Shown here piece after piece: positions 9,231 to 27,073 of a stretch of DNA of 64,000 bases. The position numbers were made by a program, and so were the translations under genes. The number at the start of each line of letters is the position of its first letter. Position 1 is the first letter of the stretch. The DNA lies in sequence record LR756501.1. One strand, written 5' to 3'. The notes under the pieces are model-generated. The model was given only the letters and a program-made list of their open reading frames with translations. It searched no databases and was not told the DNA's origin.

Positions 9231-9243
9231 TTTTAATATATAG
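9231..9243 (+). promoter_or_regulatory. Putative late-promoter motif TTTTAATATATAG (representative copy)
   Basis: Near-identical copies lie just upstream of starts at 9248, 11908(-), 27159, 35031, 42574, 34125(-), 29840(-), 2931(-), 13370, 15336 and others. Confidence 0.65.
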
Positions 9244-11908: not shown

Positions 11909-11929
11909 AAAACTATATATTAAAATAAA

Positions 11930-19066: not shown

Positions 19067-19312
19067 TTAACTTATATAGTCACCAGGACCACTTTGACGA
19101 TCAAAATCACTACTAAAAGATTGGTCTTTTAATATTTTATTCTTATATTCAAGAAAAGCCTTTTGTATTACTCTAACTGACTCTTCCACGTCGCAAGGCT
19201 TTTTCAAATCCACTTTCATCAGAAGATTTACTATTCTTGTAGCGTAAACAAACTCCTCTGGGAGATTCATCTCTTTTGCTGTTGGTTTATTTTCGTCTAA
19301 TATTTCTTTCAT
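19067..19312 (-). CDS. Hypothetical protein
   Basis: ORF track; ATGA overlap. Confidence 0.65.
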   Translation of the reverse strand: MKEILDENKPTAKEMNLPEEFVYATRIVNLLMKVDLKKPCDVEESVRVIQKAFLEYKNKILKDQSFSSDFDRQSGPGDYIS

Positions 19313-19536
19313 AACATTTCATCTATTAATCTTGATCTCATCCAATTTTTTAATTCATCTTCTTTGAAATAAACCAAGAAAGTTCCATCGTTCATTTTAT
19401 GTCCGTCAAGATTATACTTTTCATTTTCTTCTTGGGTTACAAATGTAACAATTTCTTTGGTATCTTCGTCCATACGACTATACCACGCATTTGCGCCAAT
19501 CACCCAACCTTTTTTAGTAATTTTATCAAGACTCAT
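19309..19536 (-). CDS. Small protein with C-terminal RSRLIDEML tail
   Basis: Shared C-terminal motif. Confidence 0.7.
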   Translation of the reverse strand: MSLDKITKKGWVIGANAWYSRMDEDTKEIVTFVTQEENEKYNLDGHKMNDGTFLVYFKEDELKNWMRSRLIDEML

Positions 19537-19732
19537 GTTTATTAGTCATTTCATCTATTAAATTTGTTCTAACTAAATTCTTCATTTCGTTCTTCATTAA
19601 AACAGCCTTTTCGTACATATCATTAATTTTATCTGAATCCATAAACTTTCGGGTTCTATCAAAAGAATTTAATAATTTATCTATACATTCTTTCTCAAAT
19701 GCCACTTGTTCAAATAAATCTTTATCCATCAC
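19526..19732 (-). CDS. Small protein with C-terminal RTNLIDEM tail
   Basis: Shared C-terminal motif. Confidence 0.7.
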   Translation of the reverse strand: MMDKDLFEQVAFEKECIDKLLNSFDRTRKFMDSDKINDMYEKAVLMKNEMKNLVRTNLIDEMTNKHES

Positions 19733-20007
19733 TTATTAGTCATTTCATCTATTAATTTCGTTCTTCTGAAATTTTGATATTCTTCTGTATCATGTCTCCT
19801 ACCTTCAACGTAAAACTGGTGACCTATTCCGTCAAAAAATTCTATAGCTGGTCCGTCTTCTCTATGTAGTTTATTGTTAAGTTTATATTCAAATCTATCT
19901 CCGAATCTGATCTTTTGAGGTTCGTTACATTTAAGCCAACTTAGTACACCAACCTCTTCTGTGTAAAATTCTATATCTAGTTTTGCGTCTTTAGTTTTTA
20001 TGGGCAT
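19729..20007 (-). CDS. Small protein with LHREDGPA motif and RTKLIDEM tail
   Basis: LHREDGPAIEF is a common phage repeat unit; shared C-terminal motif. Confidence 0.75.
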   Translation of the reverse strand: MPIKTKDAKLDIEFYTEEVGVLSWLKCNEPQKIRFGDRFEYKLNNKLHREDGPAIEFFDGIGHQFYVEGRRHDTEEYQNFRRTKLIDEMTNK

Positions 20008-20261
20008 AATTCATCTATTAGTTTTGTTCTGTGATAATTCTTAAACTCTTCTAATGAGAGAAAGAGATCGAAGATTTTACCTTCCCATTCACATTTATCA
20101 CAAATATAGTTTCTGTCTTTCATATCGGCCATGAAGTCATCTATTTCACCAGTATTATTACCACATTGGGGACAGTGTAGAGTAGATGGCCAACCACTTC
20201 TACCAACCCAACCATATGAGTTAGGAACAACTCTAGTTACATATCCATTTTCGTTGTACAT
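19998..20261 (-). CDS. Zinc-ribbon protein with RTKLIDEL tail
   Basis: CPQC...CDKC; shared C-terminal motif. Confidence 0.75.
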   Translation of the reverse strand: MYNENGYVTRVVPNSYGWVGRSGWPSTLHCPQCGNNTGEIDDFMADMKDRNYICDKCEWEGKIFDLFLSLEEFKNYHRTKLIDELCP

Positions 20262-20476
20262 TAAATAGTCTTGACTATATTGATTATTGTTCCAAGGAAA
20301 TCTTTAATCCAGTTACCAATGAGGGAACCGCTCCAAAGTGGGAAAAACAAAATTACAATAATTAAAATGAAAAGCAAAAACTTTTTTATATTTTTTCTAT
20401 TATTGTGCCAAAACAAGATGAGATTAAATGGTCTCTTAGCTGGATCTTTTATTTTTCTACCATCGTGAATATTCAT
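20261..20476 (-). CDS. Small membrane protein
   Basis: FLLFILIIVILFFPLW hydrophobic helix. Confidence 0.65.
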   Translation of the reverse strand: MNIHDGRKIKDPAKRPFNLILFWHNNRKNIKKFLLFILIIVILFFPLWSGSLIGNWIKDFLGTIINIVKTI

Positions 20477-20502: not shown

Positions 20503-21000
20503 TTAAAAGACGAAATAAGTTTTCAAAATATCACCTAAACATTTTCTATTAATCACTTGGCACATTGTGAATATACATTTCTTACCGTTAAGTTCTATAA
20601 CAGAACCACTAAATAAACCTCTGAGCTTCTTACCTTTTATAGACTTAAATGGTATCGTAACATTTTTAAATAAAACACCTTCTTTTATAACACCATACAT
20701 TTTATTTTTAACCTCTTTATCTATTATACCGTGATTGAGATCAGAAGTATCGTGACCAATTACCTGATATTTATTATCCAATTCTATTATTTTAACAAAA
20801 GCTTCGTTAACGTCTAATATAACATTAGTATTAGCGTCAGCTATAGCCATAGGACAAGGATTAAGATCAAAGATTTTAAAGAATTTTTCCTCCACTATTC
20901 GTAGTTCTTCAGTAGTACATTTTAGTTCTCTTTCTACGTAATCTTGTTCAATAACAATACCAGACGTATTAGGCTCTTCACAATGATGAATTAATTTCAT
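20503..21000 (-). CDS. Stand-alone PAS-domain protein
   Basis: IFDLNPCPMAIAD....ILDVNEAF.......QVIG is a classic PAS N-terminal signature. Confidence 0.75.
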   Translation of the reverse strand: MKLIHHCEEPNTSGIVIEQDYVERELKCTTEELRIVEEKFFKIFDLNPCPMAIADANTNVILDVNEAFVKIIELDNKYQVIGHDTSDLNHGIIDKEVKNKMYGVIKEGVLFKNVTIPFKSIKGKKLRGLFSGSVIELNGKKCIFTMCQVINRKCLGDILKTYFVF

Positions 21001-21062: not shown

Positions 21063-21278
21063 TTACAATCCTCTTTCTATGAGATGTTCCCGTATAGATT
21101 GAAATTTACCGTCTTTATCTAGTTCTACTATATCCCACACTTCTTTTGGATCTACTTTTGTAATTGATTTGGATTTAAAATCTATAACTAAGTACCAAGA
21201 ATTTCCATTAGATACGATGGTATCAAGTATTCTACAATACGTTCTTCCGTCTTTTAATAAGACAATTTTATTTTTCAT
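21063..21278 (-). CDS. Hypothetical protein
   Basis: ORF track. Confidence 0.65.
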   Translation of the reverse strand: MKNKIVLLKDGRTYCRILDTIVSNGNSWYLVIDFKSKSITKVDPKEVWDIVELDKDGKFQSIREHLIERGL

Positions 21279-21281
21279 ATT

Positions 21282-21872
21282 TTAAATTATTTTATATCTA
21301 CTACTCATTAACATCTTTGGTGTAAATTCCTCCATCGCTAGCAATGAAATAGACTTAACAAGTATATCGATATATATCGTGTTTTTAGTTTCAAGTTGTC
21401 GATTTATATCAGTTACTAAAGCGTCAACTAATTTATTCTCCATCTTTTGAACAATATCCATACCTGTAGCAGCCCTTATATCTTGCTTATCTTCGTGAGA
21501 CATAGTTATACCATATTCCTTCTGCTCAAGTTTAGGCATTATTTCAAAAGTCTTACCACTCAAATTAAGCTTAGATAATATCTTCATACTCATAGGTAAA
21601 AGATTTTGTCCTATATCCCTGGTTGGTGGATCAGCGTTCGGAAACCATCCTCCCATACCTCTACCATGTGAATCATAATCATAACTTTCTATTTGATGAT
21701 ACTCAGCGTAAACACACATAAATTGTCTAACTTCGGGATCTATGACCTTCAACGCGTCCAAAATTGGAGTCCATTTTCTTAAAGCTTTCTCACTATCTAT
21801 CTTGTAGTTTTTGCCTTTTATTTCATATTCTTTTTCCATGTTACTCTTCCTTATTTTTTTCAGCGTACTCAT
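21282..21872 (-). CDS. Truncated/internally deleted paralog of a gp23-type major capsid protein (likely start at ATG 21839)
   Basis: QDIRAATGMDIVQKMENKLVDALVTDINRQL resembles T4 gp23 QDLRAVHGMDADAELSGILATEIMLEINREV (recalled sequence). N-terminal KWTPIL..YAEYH..GQNLLP resembles capsid-protein N-termini. Confidence 0.6.
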   Translation of the reverse strand: MSTLKKIRKSNMEKEYEIKGKNYKIDSEKALRKWTPILDALKVIDPEVRQFMCVYAEYHQIESYDYDSHGRGMGGWFPNADPPTRDIGQNLLPMSMKILSKLNLSGKTFEIMPKLEQKEYGITMSHEDKQDIRAATGMDIVQKMENKLVDALVTDINRQLETKNTIYIDILVKSISLLAMEEFTPKMLMSSRYKII

Positions 21873-22098
21873 TTATCCACTTTTGACGCTCAATTTTTTC
21901 AAGTCTTTCCATCTCATCGTAATCTGGTAAAATACCTGTACTATAAGATTCTAGACACTCAAGACAACCAGCCCCGTGCAATTCCTTCTGATTCTTTAGT
22001 TTTGGATCACTATTACTTACATGTATCCATTTACCACATCTAGCCCTACTAATAGAACTGTGGTAAAACAACTTATCTTTGTTTATTATAAAATTCAT
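21841..22098 (-). CDS. Hypothetical Cys-containing protein
   Basis: ORF track; RCG...CLEC. Confidence 0.65.
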   Translation of the reverse strand: MNFIINKDKLFYHSSISRARCGKWIHVSNSDPKLKNQKELHGAGCLECLESYSTGILPDYDEMERLEKIERQKWINEYAEKNKEE

Positions 22099-22142
22099 AA
22101 TCTTTTTTATTTGTATATATTATATAAATATTGTCATTTTTA

Positions 22143-22469
22143 TCATTTCTGACAATTAAGCATTTTATCCATTAGAACCATTCTTCTAAAATTTTTGAAT
22201 TCGTCTTCTGTAAAGTTTACGGCCACTGGAAAATCTATTTCTTCTTTGTTTCTAATTGATTTGGCTAGTTCCAATGAGAATTCGTCTATATCTTCTTTTT
22301 TGCCTAGTTCTTCTATTTCTTTCATGTCGAGATATAGTTTATATTCTTCTGGAAGCCAACCCATCCATTTAGTATAATCGTAGTCGAATAATCTTCCTTC
22401 TATAAAACCTCCCCAAGAGCTTTTGGGGCATCTATGTTTAGTTTTAAATTTTAGTTTTCTTCTTCCCAT
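22143..22469 (-). CDS. Small protein with RRMVLMDKML tail
   Basis: Variant of the shared C-terminal motif. Confidence 0.65.
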   Translation of the reverse strand: MGRRKLKFKTKHRCPKSSWGGFIEGRLFDYDYTKWMGWLPEEYKLYLDMKEIEELGKKEDIDEFSLELAKSIRNKEEIDFPVAVNFTEDEFKNFRRMVLMDKMLNCQK

Positions 22470-22686
22470 ATAGTACGTCGTCGATTAATTTATTTCTCTT
22501 GATATTAATTCTCTCACATAAAATGTCTGCAACAAAAGAATTTGTATCTTCGTCAAAGATGCCTTTATGAAATATTAATTCAACCCCAGCCATTCCAAAA
22601 TTTGAACCACTACCAATAGATCTTGCACCATCAGATACTTCAATTACTAATTCTTCGCCTTTGTATATTGTTTCTATTCTTTGCAC
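22444..22686 (-). CDS. Small protein with KRNKLIDDVL tail
   Basis: Variant of the shared C-terminal motif. Confidence 0.65.
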   Translation of the reverse strand: MQRIETIYKGEELVIEVSDGARSIGSGSNFGMAGVELIFHKGIFDEDTNSFVADILCERINIKRNKLIDDVLYGKKKTKI

Positions 22687-22937
22687 ATTTTATCTATTAA
22701 TTCTGTTCTCTTTATTGCTTTAAATTCATGTGGTTCTAATAAATATTTACTAAGTCCTCTCCAGTTACATTTTTCACACCTTATAAAAGCCATACCACTT
22801 CTAAATCCCCTATCATCCTTACCTTTACAAATTAGATGAAACATTTCGTGTTTCCCACATATAGGACAACATTGTTGCCTATCGCCAATTGTAATGCTAT
22901 AACCAGCTTTTTCTTCGTATGTATCAGTTATTATCAT
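22674..22937 (-). CDS. Zinc-ribbon protein with KRTELIDKM tail
   Basis: CPIC...CEKC; shared motif. Confidence 0.75.
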   Translation of the reverse strand: MIITDTYEEKAGYSITIGDRQQCCPICGKHEMFHLICKGKDDRGFRSGMAFIRCEKCNWRGLSKYLLEPHEFKAIKRTELIDKMCKE

Positions 22938-23124
22938 TTAATATTTTATCTATTAATTCTGTTCTTTCTTTACTAAGAAGATATTGATAAAATCTACTAT
23001 CCATAAGATATTCCTTACTTAATAAACATTTGATCCATTTTTCCCAATTTTCTGGTATATCTTCTTCAAATTTGAAAAATTCTTTTTGTAGTTCGTCCCT
23101 AGTTAATTTATCTATGTTTAACAT
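22924..23124 (-). CDS. Small protein with ERTELIDKIL tail
   Basis: Shared motif. Confidence 0.7.
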   Translation of the reverse strand: MLNIDKLTRDELQKEFFKFEEDIPENWEKWIKCLLSKEYLMDSRFYQYLLSKERTELIDKILNDNN

Positions 23125-23468
23125 AATATTTTATCTATCAATTCTGTTCTCTTTATATTCTTAATCTCATTATCACTTAATAAATCTTTACCGTCACCGT
23201 CCCACCTACACTTCTTACATATTATATGTAACCACACATTATAATCACCTAATACGTTAATATGTTCTATATTAATATGATCCCAAGGCCATTTTGGAAA
23301 CCAATCGGTTAAATCCCCATCTGGCAATTCAGGCAGTTCATGAATTGCCTTTCCGAAAATATCGTTACCATATACTTTCTTACCATTACAAACAGATCCT
23401 CCAACTGATTCATTTATAAAATGACCAGTCCATCCACAATTAGGACAATATTTTTTAAACTCTATCAT
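23118..23468 (-). CDS. Zinc-ribbon protein with KRTELIDKIL tail
   Basis: CPNC...CKKC; shared motif. Confidence 0.75.
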   Translation of the reverse strand: MIEFKKYCPNCGWTGHFINESVGGSVCNGKKVYGNDIFGKAIHELPELPDGDLTDWFPKWPWDHINIEHINVLGDYNVWLHIICKKCRWDGDGKDLLSDNEIKNIKRTELIDKILC

Positions 23469-26400
23469 ATTATTTCAAAACTACTTATACCATTTTCATC
23501 TTTAACTACATTGATAATCATATCACTAGCTATTTCATTATCGTGTTCTATAACTATTAATTTATCAATCTTATTTTTCAACACTTCTAATAACTCCATG
23601 AATTTATCTACTGATTTATTCACAAGTCTATTAATAACTTCATCTAAAAACATAAAGTTTGGTTTACTCTTAAAGTTTATAATTCTAAGTACCATCTTTA
23701 AAATAATAGCACTGAAAGTTCTTTCCATACCACTAGTTTCAATAACATTAATAATATCATCTAACCCATCGTGTTGTAATTTCAAATTCAAATCTTCGTC
23801 GAAGAATAATGTGAAATTAATGTTTGTTAGCAAGGAGTTCAACTCTTCATTTAATATATCAATGTTCTTTGTTAAAAGATAAGTTGGGAGACCAGTTCTG
23901 TGCATTAGTTTTAAATAAACGTTGTGAAGTTCTTCTCTCTTTTCCTGCTCAATATAACGCTCTAATTTATCCTTTAAATCCACTATAACCTTCTTAGACA
24001 GAGTGATCTCGTTAGAATAGGACAGTTTATCATCTAAAAGTTCGCCCCTCTTAGAAGTGAGCGTATCTATCTGTTCTTTAATAGATTTTAGTGAGGTATT
24101 GATACGTTCGTTCTCAGTTATAAGATCTTCGTTTTTAAGATATTCGTTTAACAATTTTGTGTTGTCTTCAAAGGATCTCTGAGCGTCTTTGTACTGTGAA
24201 GTCAACAGATCTCTCTTGTGGGTTAAGGTTCTACATTTTTCAAAAAGAGCTTTATCTACTTTAAGACTGGTGATGGTGAGGGATAGTCTTTTTATTTCAG
24301 TATCTAGTTTTGAAATATATTTCTTTCTCTCTTCTATTTTAGTATCGTATGAAGCGTTTTCTGTCTCAGCTTTCTCTTTATTCTTCATGACTTCTTCAAT
24401 TCTATCTTGAATATAAGCGACGTTGAAGTTATCTACCTTGTTTTGAATTTCTTTTATTTTATCATTGAACTCAATAGTTTTTTCTTCAACTAATCTTTCT
24501 GTTAGTTCTTTAAGTGATTCTAATTTTGTTTTACAATCATTTAAGGAATCTATCTTTTCTTTACCGTCTTTTGTTATATCTTCTATTTTCTTTTTACTTT
24601 CGTTAATAAGACCGTTTATATGTTCTTCGTCCTTAGTAACAATGGGTTGATTACAAGTAACACAAATCTGGTTTTCACCGTAAAGCATATTTGTATAGTC
24701 ATTGATCTTGTTTTTTTCATTTAAACCATTCTGTTTTAGATTATCAAGATCCATTTTATGACGATTTCTGGTTTTTTCAATATCATTTCTTTTGTTATTG
24801 GAATTATTAACTATTTCGTTAATGGTTTCCCTTAACTCAATTCTAAACCCAGCAATATTATTTCTAAGATAATCAATATACTTTGTCTTCTCGATGTTAA
24901 TATCCTTATCAACGTTAAGTATTTTCTCTTCGTTTTGTTTGAAGACGTTCTTTAATTGCAACAGTTCAATATCTCTTTTATTCTTCTCAGTAACGTATTT
25001 TTCGTGTTGACCTGTTAATTTTTCAAAGTTATCGTAATCAAACTCCTCGGGTAAAAGAGTTATATCTTTTTCAAGTTCATCAATCTCTTTACGTATCTCT
25101 TCCTTTTCAGTTTTAGATACCCTTATTTGTGTTTTAACTTCATTCACATTAATGTTCATTACTGTTTCGTCCATTTTGTGTAATCTTCTTAAACAGTCTT
25201 CTTTTTCGTTAATACTATCTAATATTTGTTTATCTATATCTTCTATATCAACATTAGTATCAGATAAGAAGTCTTCCTTGTCTTTTAAATCATCAGATAT
25301 TTTTTTGATTTCGTTTTGTAGTTCGATCTGGTTAACATTTATCTTCTCGAGATTTAATTCTTTTTTATATTCTTTAAACTCAGTCAATTTTTTATCAAAT
25401 ATATCGTAACCAGCGTCCTTTATAATAGAATCAATGAAAACACTTCTATCCATAGAAAGAAGAGAGTTCAGATTATCTGCGTTAGTAAGAGCCAATCTCA
25501 CAAAATCGTCAAAATTACCAAGTACTTCATCTAGTAATTTTTGTGTAGACGCTTTTCTTTCACCAGTTAATTTATTCTCATTAGACATTTCAGTGCCCTT
25601 GTAATAATCAAGAGTCATTGGTACAGATTTAATTTCTCTACCTTTCTTAAATTCTCTTTCTACCTTTCTGTACATTATATACTTCTCACCGTTCACATCT
25701 ATAACAGCACCACCGTCACAAGCGTTCTTATTCCTATTCTTATTTATATATCTGTTATTACCATTCTTCTCTGTTTTTTGTGTTGATATTGTAGTGCCGT
25801 AAAGTATAAAACATATAGCATCAATTATAGTAGTCTTACCTTGTTGATTTTCACCACCAATTTGAATAACCCCATTAACGTTATCCCATTCAATTATATT
25901 ATCGTCACCGTAAGATTTGAAATTACTAAACCAAAACTTATCAATGTTCCAGATAATATTTCTAGTATCACTTAATTGTAATCTATCATTTATAACATTA
26001 TCTATTTCAATTACTTGATTTATAAAATCTTCTTTAAATTTATTTTCTTTGAGGTATTGTTTTATAATGCCTTGTTGTACGTCTTTATCGTTTATATCAA
26101 TAATTTCGGACAACATTTTACCGTCTTTGATGTCTGTATAGATTCTGTTAGGTTTAATTTCAATATCTTCTGCTCCGTATTTTTCTTTAAGATATTTTCT
26201 TATTTTAGTTTCGTTTTCGTTTGTAATGAAGGCAGCGTGTTCGTTCCATTCGACTCTAAACTTGTTGTATTTACCAACGTATTTAGAAATCAGATGTAAT
26301 TTATCGTAATCTGTATTTGGATTGATTTCGAATTTAATGAAACGATGTTCGTTATCAATATTAATATCTTGGACTGTGCCTTCTTCTATATTCCAAAGGA

Positions 26401-27073
26401 GATAGCCGTGACCGAATGGATCTTCACCGAAGTTTTGTTGAATGAGAGAACTTGGATAAGCCNNNNNNNNNNNNNNNNNNNNNTGTCTTAGGTGAATATC
26501 ACCAAAGAAACCAAATTCTCCTTTGAAATCTGATGGGCCAGGAAAAGTTCTGTTACCTGGATTGTAACCGTTATGATATACACAACCATCAATAGGGTCG
26601 TGATATAAGTCGATATAAGTAAGTTTCTTATCTCTTGTGTGGTTTATATTTTTCCAAGGATTGATGCCGTTATATCTATGGTCGACGTGGTCCCACACTA
26701 CCCACATGACGTTATCGTCTGGGTAAAAACCAGATTGGTTATAATAAGTAACTCTAGGATTTTGAAGAAGATCTGTAACAGTTTTAACTGTATCTATTCT
26801 ACTTCTATTTTTCTTTCTGATTTCGTGGTTGCCGCGTGTAATGATAACGGGGGCAATTTTAGAGAAGCGATTGAGTATCTCACCGATAAGAATAAGGGCT
26901 TCGCCTTCGAGGTCGATATAGTCGCTATATGTATCTCCAGCGACAACTATTCTATCGGGTTTTTGTTCTTCTAATTTCTTGTAAACTTGTTGTAAGACTT
27001 TTCTGTATTCATCGTGTCTATCCAAAGACTTATAAACGTGTATGTCCGCGAAGTGGGCAATTGTTTTGATCAT
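23465..27073 (-). CDS. sbcCD: Fused Mre11/SbcD nuclease - Rad50/SbcC ATPase (T4 gp47-gp46-like) recombination/repair protein
   Basis: Phosphoesterase motifs FADIH, VAGD, RGNHE, GDIH; Walker A GENQQGKTT; coiled coil with CVTC zinc hook; signature TSGMERT; Walker B FLDE; H-loop VIEH. Contains a 21-N assembly gap. Confidence 0.92.
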   Translation of the reverse strand: MIKTIAHFADIHVYKSLDRHDEYRKVLQQVYKKLEEQKPDRIVVAGDTYSDYIDLEGEALILIGEILNRFSKIAPVIITRGNHEIRKKNRSRIDTVKTVTDLLQNPRVTYYNQSGFYPDDNVMWVVWDHVDHRYNGINPWKNINHTRDKKLTYIDLYHDPIDGCVYHNGYNPGNRTFPGPSDFKGEFGFFGDIHLRXXXXXXXXAYPSSLIQQNFGEDPFGHGYLLWNIEEGTVQDINIDNEHRFIKFEINPNTDYDKLHLISKYVGKYNKFRVEWNEHAAFITNENETKIRKYLKEKYGAEDIEIKPNRIYTDIKDGKMLSEIIDINDKDVQQGIIKQYLKENKFKEDFINQVIEIDNVINDRLQLSDTRNIIWNIDKFWFSNFKSYGDDNIIEWDNVNGVIQIGGENQQGKTTIIDAICFILYGTTISTQKTEKNGNNRYINKNRNKNACDGGAVIDVNGEKYIMYRKVEREFKKGREIKSVPMTLDYYKGTEMSNENKLTGERKASTQKLLDEVLGNFDDFVRLALTNADNLNSLLSMDRSVFIDSIIKDAGYDIFDKKLTEFKEYKKELNLEKINVNQIELQNEIKKISDDLKDKEDFLSDTNVDIEDIDKQILDSINEKEDCLRRLHKMDETVMNINVNEVKTQIRVSKTEKEEIRKEIDELEKDITLLPEEFDYDNFEKLTGQHEKYVTEKNKRDIELLQLKNVFKQNEEKILNVDKDINIEKTKYIDYLRNNIAGFRIELRETINEIVNNSNNKRNDIEKTRNRHKMDLDNLKQNGLNEKNKINDYTNMLYGENQICVTCNQPIVTKDEEHINGLINESKKKIEDITKDGKEKIDSLNDCKTKLESLKELTERLVEEKTIEFNDKIKEIQNKVDNFNVAYIQDRIEEVMKNKEKAETENASYDTKIEERKKYISKLDTEIKRLSLTITSLKVDKALFEKCRTLTHKRDLLTSQYKDAQRSFEDNTKLLNEYLKNEDLITENERINTSLKSIKEQIDTLTSKRGELLDDKLSYSNEITLSKKVIVDLKDKLERYIEQEKREELHNVYLKLMHRTGLPTYLLTKNIDILNEELNSLLTNINFTLFFDEDLNLKLQHDGLDDIINVIETSGMERTFSAIILKMVLRIINFKSKPNFMFLDEVINRLVNKSVDKFMELLEVLKNKIDKLIVIEHDNEIASDMIINVVKDENGISSFEII
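26463..26483. other. Assembly gap (21 N)
   Basis: Run of n characters; the frame is preserved across it. Confidence 0.99.

Follow-up and report, generated by a model that had tools for sequence, protein, structure and literature searches.

A miniature derivative of the gp23-type major capsid protein in a huge phage, and its possible role as a mimic of the unassembled capsid subunit

Few viral proteins have been studied as much as HK97-fold capsid proteins, and we found no description of a stand-alone derivative of their P-domain that is maintained under selection. Here we describe a small gene at positions 21282..21872 (-) of a 64,000-nucleotide (nt) stretch of sequence record LR756501.1 (the window). 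Its product, referred to here as mini-MCP, is, on the evidence of sequence comparison and structure prediction, genuinely derived from the gp23-type major capsid protein (MCP) of the phage that encodes it. We tentatively suggest that it mimics unassembled pro-MCP at the phage's own prohead machinery, and we weigh this idea against several alternatives below. The window is identical to part of both of the 735,411-bp uncultured-phage records LR756501 and LR756503, which belong to a huge-phage collection (PMC7162821), and window positions equal record positions minus 255,060. The LR756501 genome is called W01, and W02, W03, W04, and G001-G005 are other genomes of its clade.

Results

When the genome was searched with mini-MCP, the protein matched the phage's own MCP over the N-terminus (E 1.4e-13) and over the spine helix (E 4e-5), the alignment for which an initial annotation made from the sequence alone had called; the same search found a second small paralogue at 565 kb. 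A profile of 85 mini-MCPs aligned with a profile of eight full-length MCPs in hhalign with a probability of 99.2% (E 1.8e-19). Given the family alignment, AlphaFold2 produced a compact model of mini-MCP (predicted local distance difference test, pLDDT, 88.9; predicted template modeling score, pTM, 0.84), and the paralogue, P0008, was predicted to have the same fold (pLDDT 90.8). The best match to the model in the ESM Atlas was a Gp23 (PF07068) cluster, with a template modeling (TM) score of 0.68 over 159 residues that include the N-terminal helices. In a comparison with VIA-align, nearly all of the top 50 PDB representative chains were HK97-fold capsid or encapsulin proteins (Z 5-7.8), T4 gp24 among them; the matches cover about 90-113 residues (model residues ~73/89-185) and leave the A-domain of the capsid chains unmatched. 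The individual Z scores are middling, and it is the uniformity of the list that argues for an HK97-type fold in the model.

Other searches returned little. Mini-MCP alone had a weak match among PHROGs (phrog_138, E 0.032), phmmer and hmmsearch against PDB gave nothing meaningful, and Foldseek with the model found no match in PDB at E<=1e-3. A BFVD search yielded weak matches to small uncharacterised phage proteins only, and a language-model atlas search returned unrelated portal fragments with low recognition. The initial annotation had described an internally deleted copy of a gp23-type capsid protein, a view that it would have given up had there been no profile or structural similarity to gp23. 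The profile alignment, the AlphaFold model, and the structural matches bear it out. The T4 gp23 string that it had quoted is likewise correct and is visible in the alignment of the full MCP to PDB 5vf3.

The ORF (open reading frame) encodes 196 amino acids (aa) from its first ATG, and its translation holds all of the motifs originally quoted for it (IDSEKALRKWTPILD, MCVYAEYH, GQNLLPMSMKI, and QDIRAATGMDIVQKMENKLVDALVTDINRQL). Because M12 (MEKEYEIKG) is the first residue in the gene calls and in all homologues, the most likely start is the ATG at 21839 and the product has 185 aa. This coding sequence (21285..21839, -; stop codon 21282-21284) is supported by homologues, gene calls, and the ratio of nonsynonymous to synonymous substitution rates (dN/dS), and the preceding 11 codons (21840..21872, -), which overlap the upstream ORF, are a possible N-terminal extension that is probably untranslated.

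Retained and missing parts were mapped by alignment with four full MCPs, by profile coordinates, and on the AlphaFold model, all of which agree. Mini-MCP has kept the N-terminal helices, a linker that varies, the helix with the NLLPxSMKI motif together with the first strand, the spine helix, and the C-terminal beta-hairpin (...SRYKII). Three clean deletions, at MCP profile positions roughly 100-340, 380-530, and at the end, where the MCP runs on and mini-MCP stops, have removed about 230 residues of distal E-loop and insertion domain, about 145 residues of A-domain, and the final ~25 residues. Counted from M12, residues 11-60 (21660..21809, -) make up two N-terminal helices carrying KKWxPILDAL and YAExH (model helices 16-29 and 35-60), a part that the alignment and the hhalign match place in common with the propeptide-like N-terminal region of the MCP. 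Residues 61-72 (21624..21659, -) are a linker of low model confidence (pLDDT 58-63) that varies in both alignments. The alignment and the model assign residues 73-100 (21540..21623, -) to the NLLPxSMKILSKLNL helix and the first strand (N-arm and E-loop base), which align with T4 gp23 residues about 91-122, and residues 101-151 (21387..21539, -) to the return strand, a short helix, and the long spine helix of the HK97 P-domain (QDIRAATGMDIVQKMENKLV...). Residues 152-185 (21285..21386, -) correspond to the C-terminal beta-hairpin of the P-domain (…FTPKMLMSSRYKII) by alignment, model, and profile.

The model comprises helices and a four-stranded sheet only, with a very short hairpin at the place of the E-loop, and the complete HK97 fold (N-arm, E-loop, P-domain, and A-domain) is not present. 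Residues invariant in both mini-MCPs and MCPs are the K, W, and P of KKWxP, the YAE, the LLP, and one E of the spine helix. As aligned and modelled, mini-MCP is the N-terminal region joined to the HK97 P-domain, a coherent and predicted inward-facing module and not a random fragment. With no A-domain and no full E-loop it would be unable to close a capsomer, from which we infer that it is not a lattice subunit.

The real head module was located at record 72-78 kb and contains the portal (phrog_213, E 2e-66), a protease-scaffold fusion, and the MCP. The 807-aa head-maturation protease is of the T4 gp21/S77 family (PF03420, phrog_207) and is fused to a scaffold-like region. The MCP (583-608 aa) comes directly after this fusion, at record 76.3-78.2 kb, and matches phrog_138 (E 1e-22) and T4 gp23 (PDB 5vf3, E 5e-5). 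An MCP-profile search of the W01 genome found no second full-length MCP paralogue. We rejected mini-MCP as the real MCP or a gp24-type vertex protein, because domains are missing and the real MCP was found, and the original judgment that the ORF is too short for a capsid protein stands. Its stated distance from any head operon holds in part: in W01 the gene, at record 276.3-276.9 kb, is ~200 kb from the head module, whereas in two smaller-genome relatives (L026 and L028) the mini-MCP gene is 7-8 kb from the MCP gene and divergent from a DNA primase gene. A mini-MCP gene was adjacent to the MCP gene at none of 68 MCP loci (±10 kb).

Mini-MCP belongs to a large family that recurs in related huge phages. 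With mini-MCP itself as the query and first row of the alignment, a full HMMER search of 1.84 billion 50%-identity representatives (E<=1e-3) gave 163 matches, about 128 of which are 130-270 aa long and share the same ends, whereas full-length MCPs account for only about 8; no Pfam or PHROG assignment was found among them. Mini-MCP shows each of the features that define the family: a length of 130-270 aa, KKWxPILDAL...YAExH, NLLPxSxKILSxLNL, the spine helix, and ...SRYxI at most three residues from the end. The same architecture is retained in homologues down to about 30% identity, and comparison with an 86%-identical orthologue gave a dN/dS of 0.149 at dS 0.52. Mini-MCP is under purifying selection, and the neutral, pseudogene-like evolution that would have undermined the initial annotation was not found. 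The short metagenome contigs of three homologues provided no useful genomic context.

Several further pieces of MCP are encoded in W01. The second mini-MCP, P0008 (189 aa; L007 1474-2043, record ~565.3 kb), carries an RTDLIDKML motif as an internal helix at the place of the deleted E-loop and insertion domain, and just upstream of it a 111-aa ORF (L007 1142-1477) resembles the MCP N-terminus only. A 188-aa protein (L015 818-1390, record ~542.3 kb) combines a coiled coil with the A-domain and the extreme C-terminal tail; it is conserved, with orthologues that are 85%, 53%, and 52% identical to it. An insertion-domain piece (L016 913-1422, ~552.6 kb) ends in DPYGEELWEDN. Additional pieces (L017, L018, L019, and L020) lie inside ORFs of 107-459 aa or are broken by stop codons, and N-terminal-only MCP-like ORFs also occur in this genome. 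Several of the pieces lie together at 542-566 kb, close to the second mini-MCP. In W02 (record 207503-207697) and W03 (record 234705-234998) we also observed a distant A-domain-like segment (E 3e-6 and 6e-5 against the A-domain paralogue) in ORFs of 243-263 aa located 5-6 kb downstream of the MCP.

Mini-MCP sits in a block with an ORF of ~72 aa, an ORF with a weak PAS_8 match, and a hydrophobic 71-aa ORF, and this block is conserved down to 42% identity. Upstream lies an 85-aa ORF (21841..22098, -), probably the first gene of the mini-MCP transcription unit; mini-MCP is most likely translationally coupled to it, as ATG 21839 sits 1 nt past its stop. About 15 nt upstream of the 85-aa ORF is a promoter-like TTTATATAATATATA element (22114..22131, -). 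A 71-aa ORF (21063..21278, -) immediately follows mini-MCP, in relatives as well (97% and 47% identity; dN/dS 0.03). Next come a 165-aa ORF whose homologue has the weak PAS_8 match (20503..21000, -) and, last in the conserved block, a 71-aa ORF with a long hydrophobic stretch (20261..20476, -), which we judge by eye to be a putative membrane protein. A 1202-aa ORF (23465-27073, -) has a 62%-identical homologue that matches Metallophos (PF00149) and, weakly, SMC_N (PF02463), and is an apparent single-chain Mre11-Rad50 fusion comparable to T4 gp47-gp46. A short masked run of N lies within this ORF, and the series of small genes to which mini-MCP belongs is found downstream of it.

A scan for promoters and terminators performed at chance level. 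A recurrent TTTTAATATATA(G) element of ATATATA type precedes many genes, among them the head genes (the L014 portal, the protease, and the MCP), DNA-metabolism genes, and the mini-MCP unit. In the window it occurs at 9236, 13355, 27144, 35019, and 42559 (+) and at 11920, 2959, 20503, 21030, and 22120 (-). At several of these elements the ATG follows only 5-8 nt later, a near-leaderless arrangement, and the head genes and the mini-MCP unit are among those with an A-rich leader of 20-30 nt. Because the element is common to head and DNA-metabolism genes, it does not indicate the timing of expression. In metatranscriptome contigs from a ~90% identical relative, the flanking genes are covered and mini-MCP is not, though contigs of this kind cannot show absence.

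Short motifs recur around the mini-MCP block and in other parts of the genome. Flanking the block, nine small ORFs (66-116 aa; window 19309-20303 and 22143-23474, -) share [FY]-K-N-x-[KR]-R-T-x-L-I-D-[EK]-M, with the core R-[TS]-x-L-I-D-[EK]-M, at 1-9 residues from the C-terminus (9 observed, 0.1 expected), and several of them have CxxC...CxxC pairs. Synonymous variation within the motif shows, at the level of sequence comparison, that it is selected as protein. In its strict DNA form it is found 13 times in the 735-kb genome, against 0 in a control; one of these copies lies within the second mini-MCP, and there are clusters at about 216, 223, 275-278, 565.6, and 673 kb. Window segments 19309-19727 and 23132-23467 are missing from the ~90% identical relative, as represented by lake metagenome and metatranscriptome contigs; that whole small genes drop out between motif copies suggests that they come and go as cassettes through recombination at the motif. 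A second, acidic-aromatic motif, DPYGEE[DN]W, is found in lineage-specific inserts of the family members P0006, P0015, P0017, and P0020, and the insertion-domain fragment carries it at its C-terminus. In P0006 and P0008, a motif of this type follows an LxxELVD or LIDKMLDEVDP element. Finally, five tandem ORFs of 341-361 aa (L014 756-6170, record ~60.7-66.2 kb) just upstream of the head module form an apparent paralogous array, judged from size and tandem order only; the one of them that was scanned has no PHROG match.

Discussion

In regard to function, the explanation we favor, though we hold it tentatively, is that mini-MCP imitates unassembled pro-MCP and engages the prohead assembly partners of its own phage. 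Because the mini-MCP keeps the residues that are invariant in the N-terminus and P-domain of the MCP, it may bind the same phage-encoded partner as that face of the MCP, most likely the protease-scaffold core of the prohead. As an optional head protein, minor or internal, or as an assembly modulator, it would then be carried into the prohead during assembly or act on it, and unlike the MCP it would remain mostly untrimmed at the MCP's putative maturation site. There is precedent for such routing in T4 and giant phages, where N-terminal propeptides direct proteins into proheads (PMC5694885).

Co-variation between mini-MCPs and MCPs is consistent with this notion. Over its first 40 residues, mini-MCP shares 58% identity with its own MCP type and 42-48% with other types, and in W01a, W02, and W03a the N-terminus of the mini-MCP is closest to the MCP type of its own genome. 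The mini-MCPs of W02 and W03 also carry features of the W02/W03 MCP lineage, including a one-residue deletion, and the P-domain part shows no preference for the own-genome type. This N-terminal resemblance points, modestly, to either a common lineage-specific partner or gene conversion of the N-terminal segment. A complex prediction of mini-MCP with the C-terminal 248 residues of the protease-scaffold protein had a score of 0.09 (mark 0.32), and we count it neither way.

Several observations speak against a pro-MCP mimic. The match to the own MCP type fails in three of eight mini-MCPs. By homology with T4, the phage's S77 protease is expected to cut after (L/I)xE. Five of six MCPs have a candidate site for it, H-x-[ILMVF]-x-E, just after YAExH, but only 7 of 76 mini-MCPs do, and this one does not. 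A maturation cleavage site in common with the MCP was thus a candidate feature that these counts do not support, and by its sequence mini-MCP does not look as if it is processed like the MCP. The gene lies outside the head module, among small accessory genes beside Mre11-Rad50 (beside primase in relatives). The A-domain-only paralogue is conserved and lacks the N-terminal region, and N-terminal targeting does not explain such a copy. Finally, searches of the whole genomes of G001 (640 kb, rated complete), G004 (243 kb, rated complete), and W04, each of which has an MCP, found no mini-MCP; W02, G002, G003, and G005 have one copy each, and W01 and W03 have two. Because it was not found in these three clade genomes, mini-MCP is an accessory gene and not an essential assembly factor, and the same patchy distribution argues against an essential determinant of capsid size, a modulator of capsid size or assembly having been among the suggestions of the initial annotation.

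Alternatively, mini-MCP may act as an immune decoy or sponge, an idea that had been raised in the initial annotation and that we consider doubtful. Together with the A-domain-only and insertion-domain pieces, it would mimic those parts of the capsid that are sensed by CapRel-, Lit-, or Avs-like systems. The patchy, accessory distribution that weakens the prohead hypothesis favors a decoy, as does a neighborhood of small genes that is characteristic of host-interaction regions, and at least two of the several MCP-domain paralogues in this one genome are conserved. The segment aligned to T4 gp23 residues ~91-122, which we take to be the Gol region sensed by Lit, is retained and conserved in mini-MCP. 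Bacterial Avs sensors, moreover, bind conserved core folds of MCPs (bioRxiv 10.64898/2026.01.04.697583). However, a sensor might be activated, and not blocked, by a fragment that binds it, and the part of mini-MCP that best preserves the MCP sequence is the N-terminal region, by homology with T4 an element of the assembly stage. In the literature searched we found no phage-encoded decoy made from a capsid fragment. A broader version, in which P-domain, A-domain, insertion-domain, and N-terminal pieces form a domain-dissected set that jointly serves as decoys or sponges for MCP-recognising host sensors, seems unlikely to us; it would, if true, represent an anti-defence strategy that has not been described so far.

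It is also conceivable, if rather improbable, that the fold has been exapted for an unrelated function, with the P-domain and helical bundle providing a stable scaffold for a new activity such as motif display or binding of host proteins. Lineage-specific inserts carrying RTxLIDKM (P0008 and P0129) or DPYGEEDW-like motifs (P0006, P0015, P0017, and P0020) would fit this explanation, since these motifs also occur on unrelated small proteins nearby, and the conserved neighbors of mini-MCP (the 71-aa, weakly PAS-like, and hydrophobic 71-aa ORFs) are not head genes. Yet the residues conserved across the family are those conserved in the MCP, which would be unexpected if only the fold mattered.

A further possibility, to which we assign a low probability, is that mini-MCP is an assembly capper or dominant-negative protein, its free P-domain taking the E-loop or N-arm of a full MCP and blocking growth of the lattice; variants of this idea include a holdase for the phage's own MCP and a poison for the capsid of a co-infecting relative. 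Neighboring subunits of an HK97-fold lattice dock on the P-domain, and mini-MCP keeps this domain without the elements for propagating the lattice. Satellites are known to redirect capsids with mimics of the MCP or scaffold (PDB 7rwz Ccm, 8g1r). A poison would, however, strike the phage's own assembly where the N-terminus is most like the own MCP type, as it is in several genomes, and the same resemblance argues against a weapon directed at competitors, which the initial annotation had suggested; purifying selection at one to two copies per genome is likewise unlike an arms-race weapon. Last, it is highly improbable that mini-MCP is a decaying, functionless remnant of a duplicated capsid gene, as some of the other, stop-interrupted MCP pieces in W01 might suggest: its low dN/dS, on which we rejected a pseudogene, its architecture conserved across distant homologues, its confidently predicted fold, and its tight operon arrangement all stand against this.

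In mini-MCP, the surface through which gp23-type proteins meet the scaffold and neighboring subunits is available as a natural minimal construct. If it engages the prohead, as we tentatively propose, it bears on the building or loading of very large capsids; if it is instead a decoy, it would represent a new class of counter-defence against capsid-sensing immunity. In either case, a recurrent 'hypothetical protein' of huge phages gains a name and a testable hypothesis.

Comparison with known systems places mini-MCP near several groups of proteins and within none of them. With T4 gp23-type MCPs (PF07068; PDB 5vf3, 6uzc) it has in common a homologous N-terminal region, N-arm, spine helix, and C-terminal P-domain strands, but it is about one third as long, is not in the head module, and is not universal in the clade; among four defining features of such proteins only homology was found, and the complete fold, the head-module position, and universality were not. 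T4 gp24 (PDB 1yue), the classical MCP paralogue, is also a second, diverged capsid copy (Z 6.7 over 108 residues), yet it is a full HK97 subunit that forms pentamers, whereas mini-MCP lacks the capsomer-forming parts. The capsid redirectors of satellites (SaPIbov5 Ccm, 7rwz; SaPI CpmB; P4 Sid; PLE TcaP, 8g1r) are likewise small or MCP-like and influence capsid assembly as mimics or binding partners of head proteins, but they are satellite-encoded and act on a helper, and Ccm has a complete HK97 fold, whereas mini-MCP is phage-encoded and of its fold retains the P-domain only. Internal proteins of T4 and ejection proteins of giant phages are similarly accessory, variable, and encoded outside the head module, with an N-terminal element in common with head proteins. 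The T4 capsid targeting sequence (CTS), however, is a short peptide followed by (L/I)xE, whereas the N-terminus of mini-MCP is a folded 50-residue helical pair on the P-domain, and a targeting element followed by a prohead-protease site was not found in it. In SPN3US-like giant phages, a truncated and presumably inactive paralogue of the prohead protease (PMC5694885) offers a precedent for a reduced copy of a head protein, derived in that case from a different parent.
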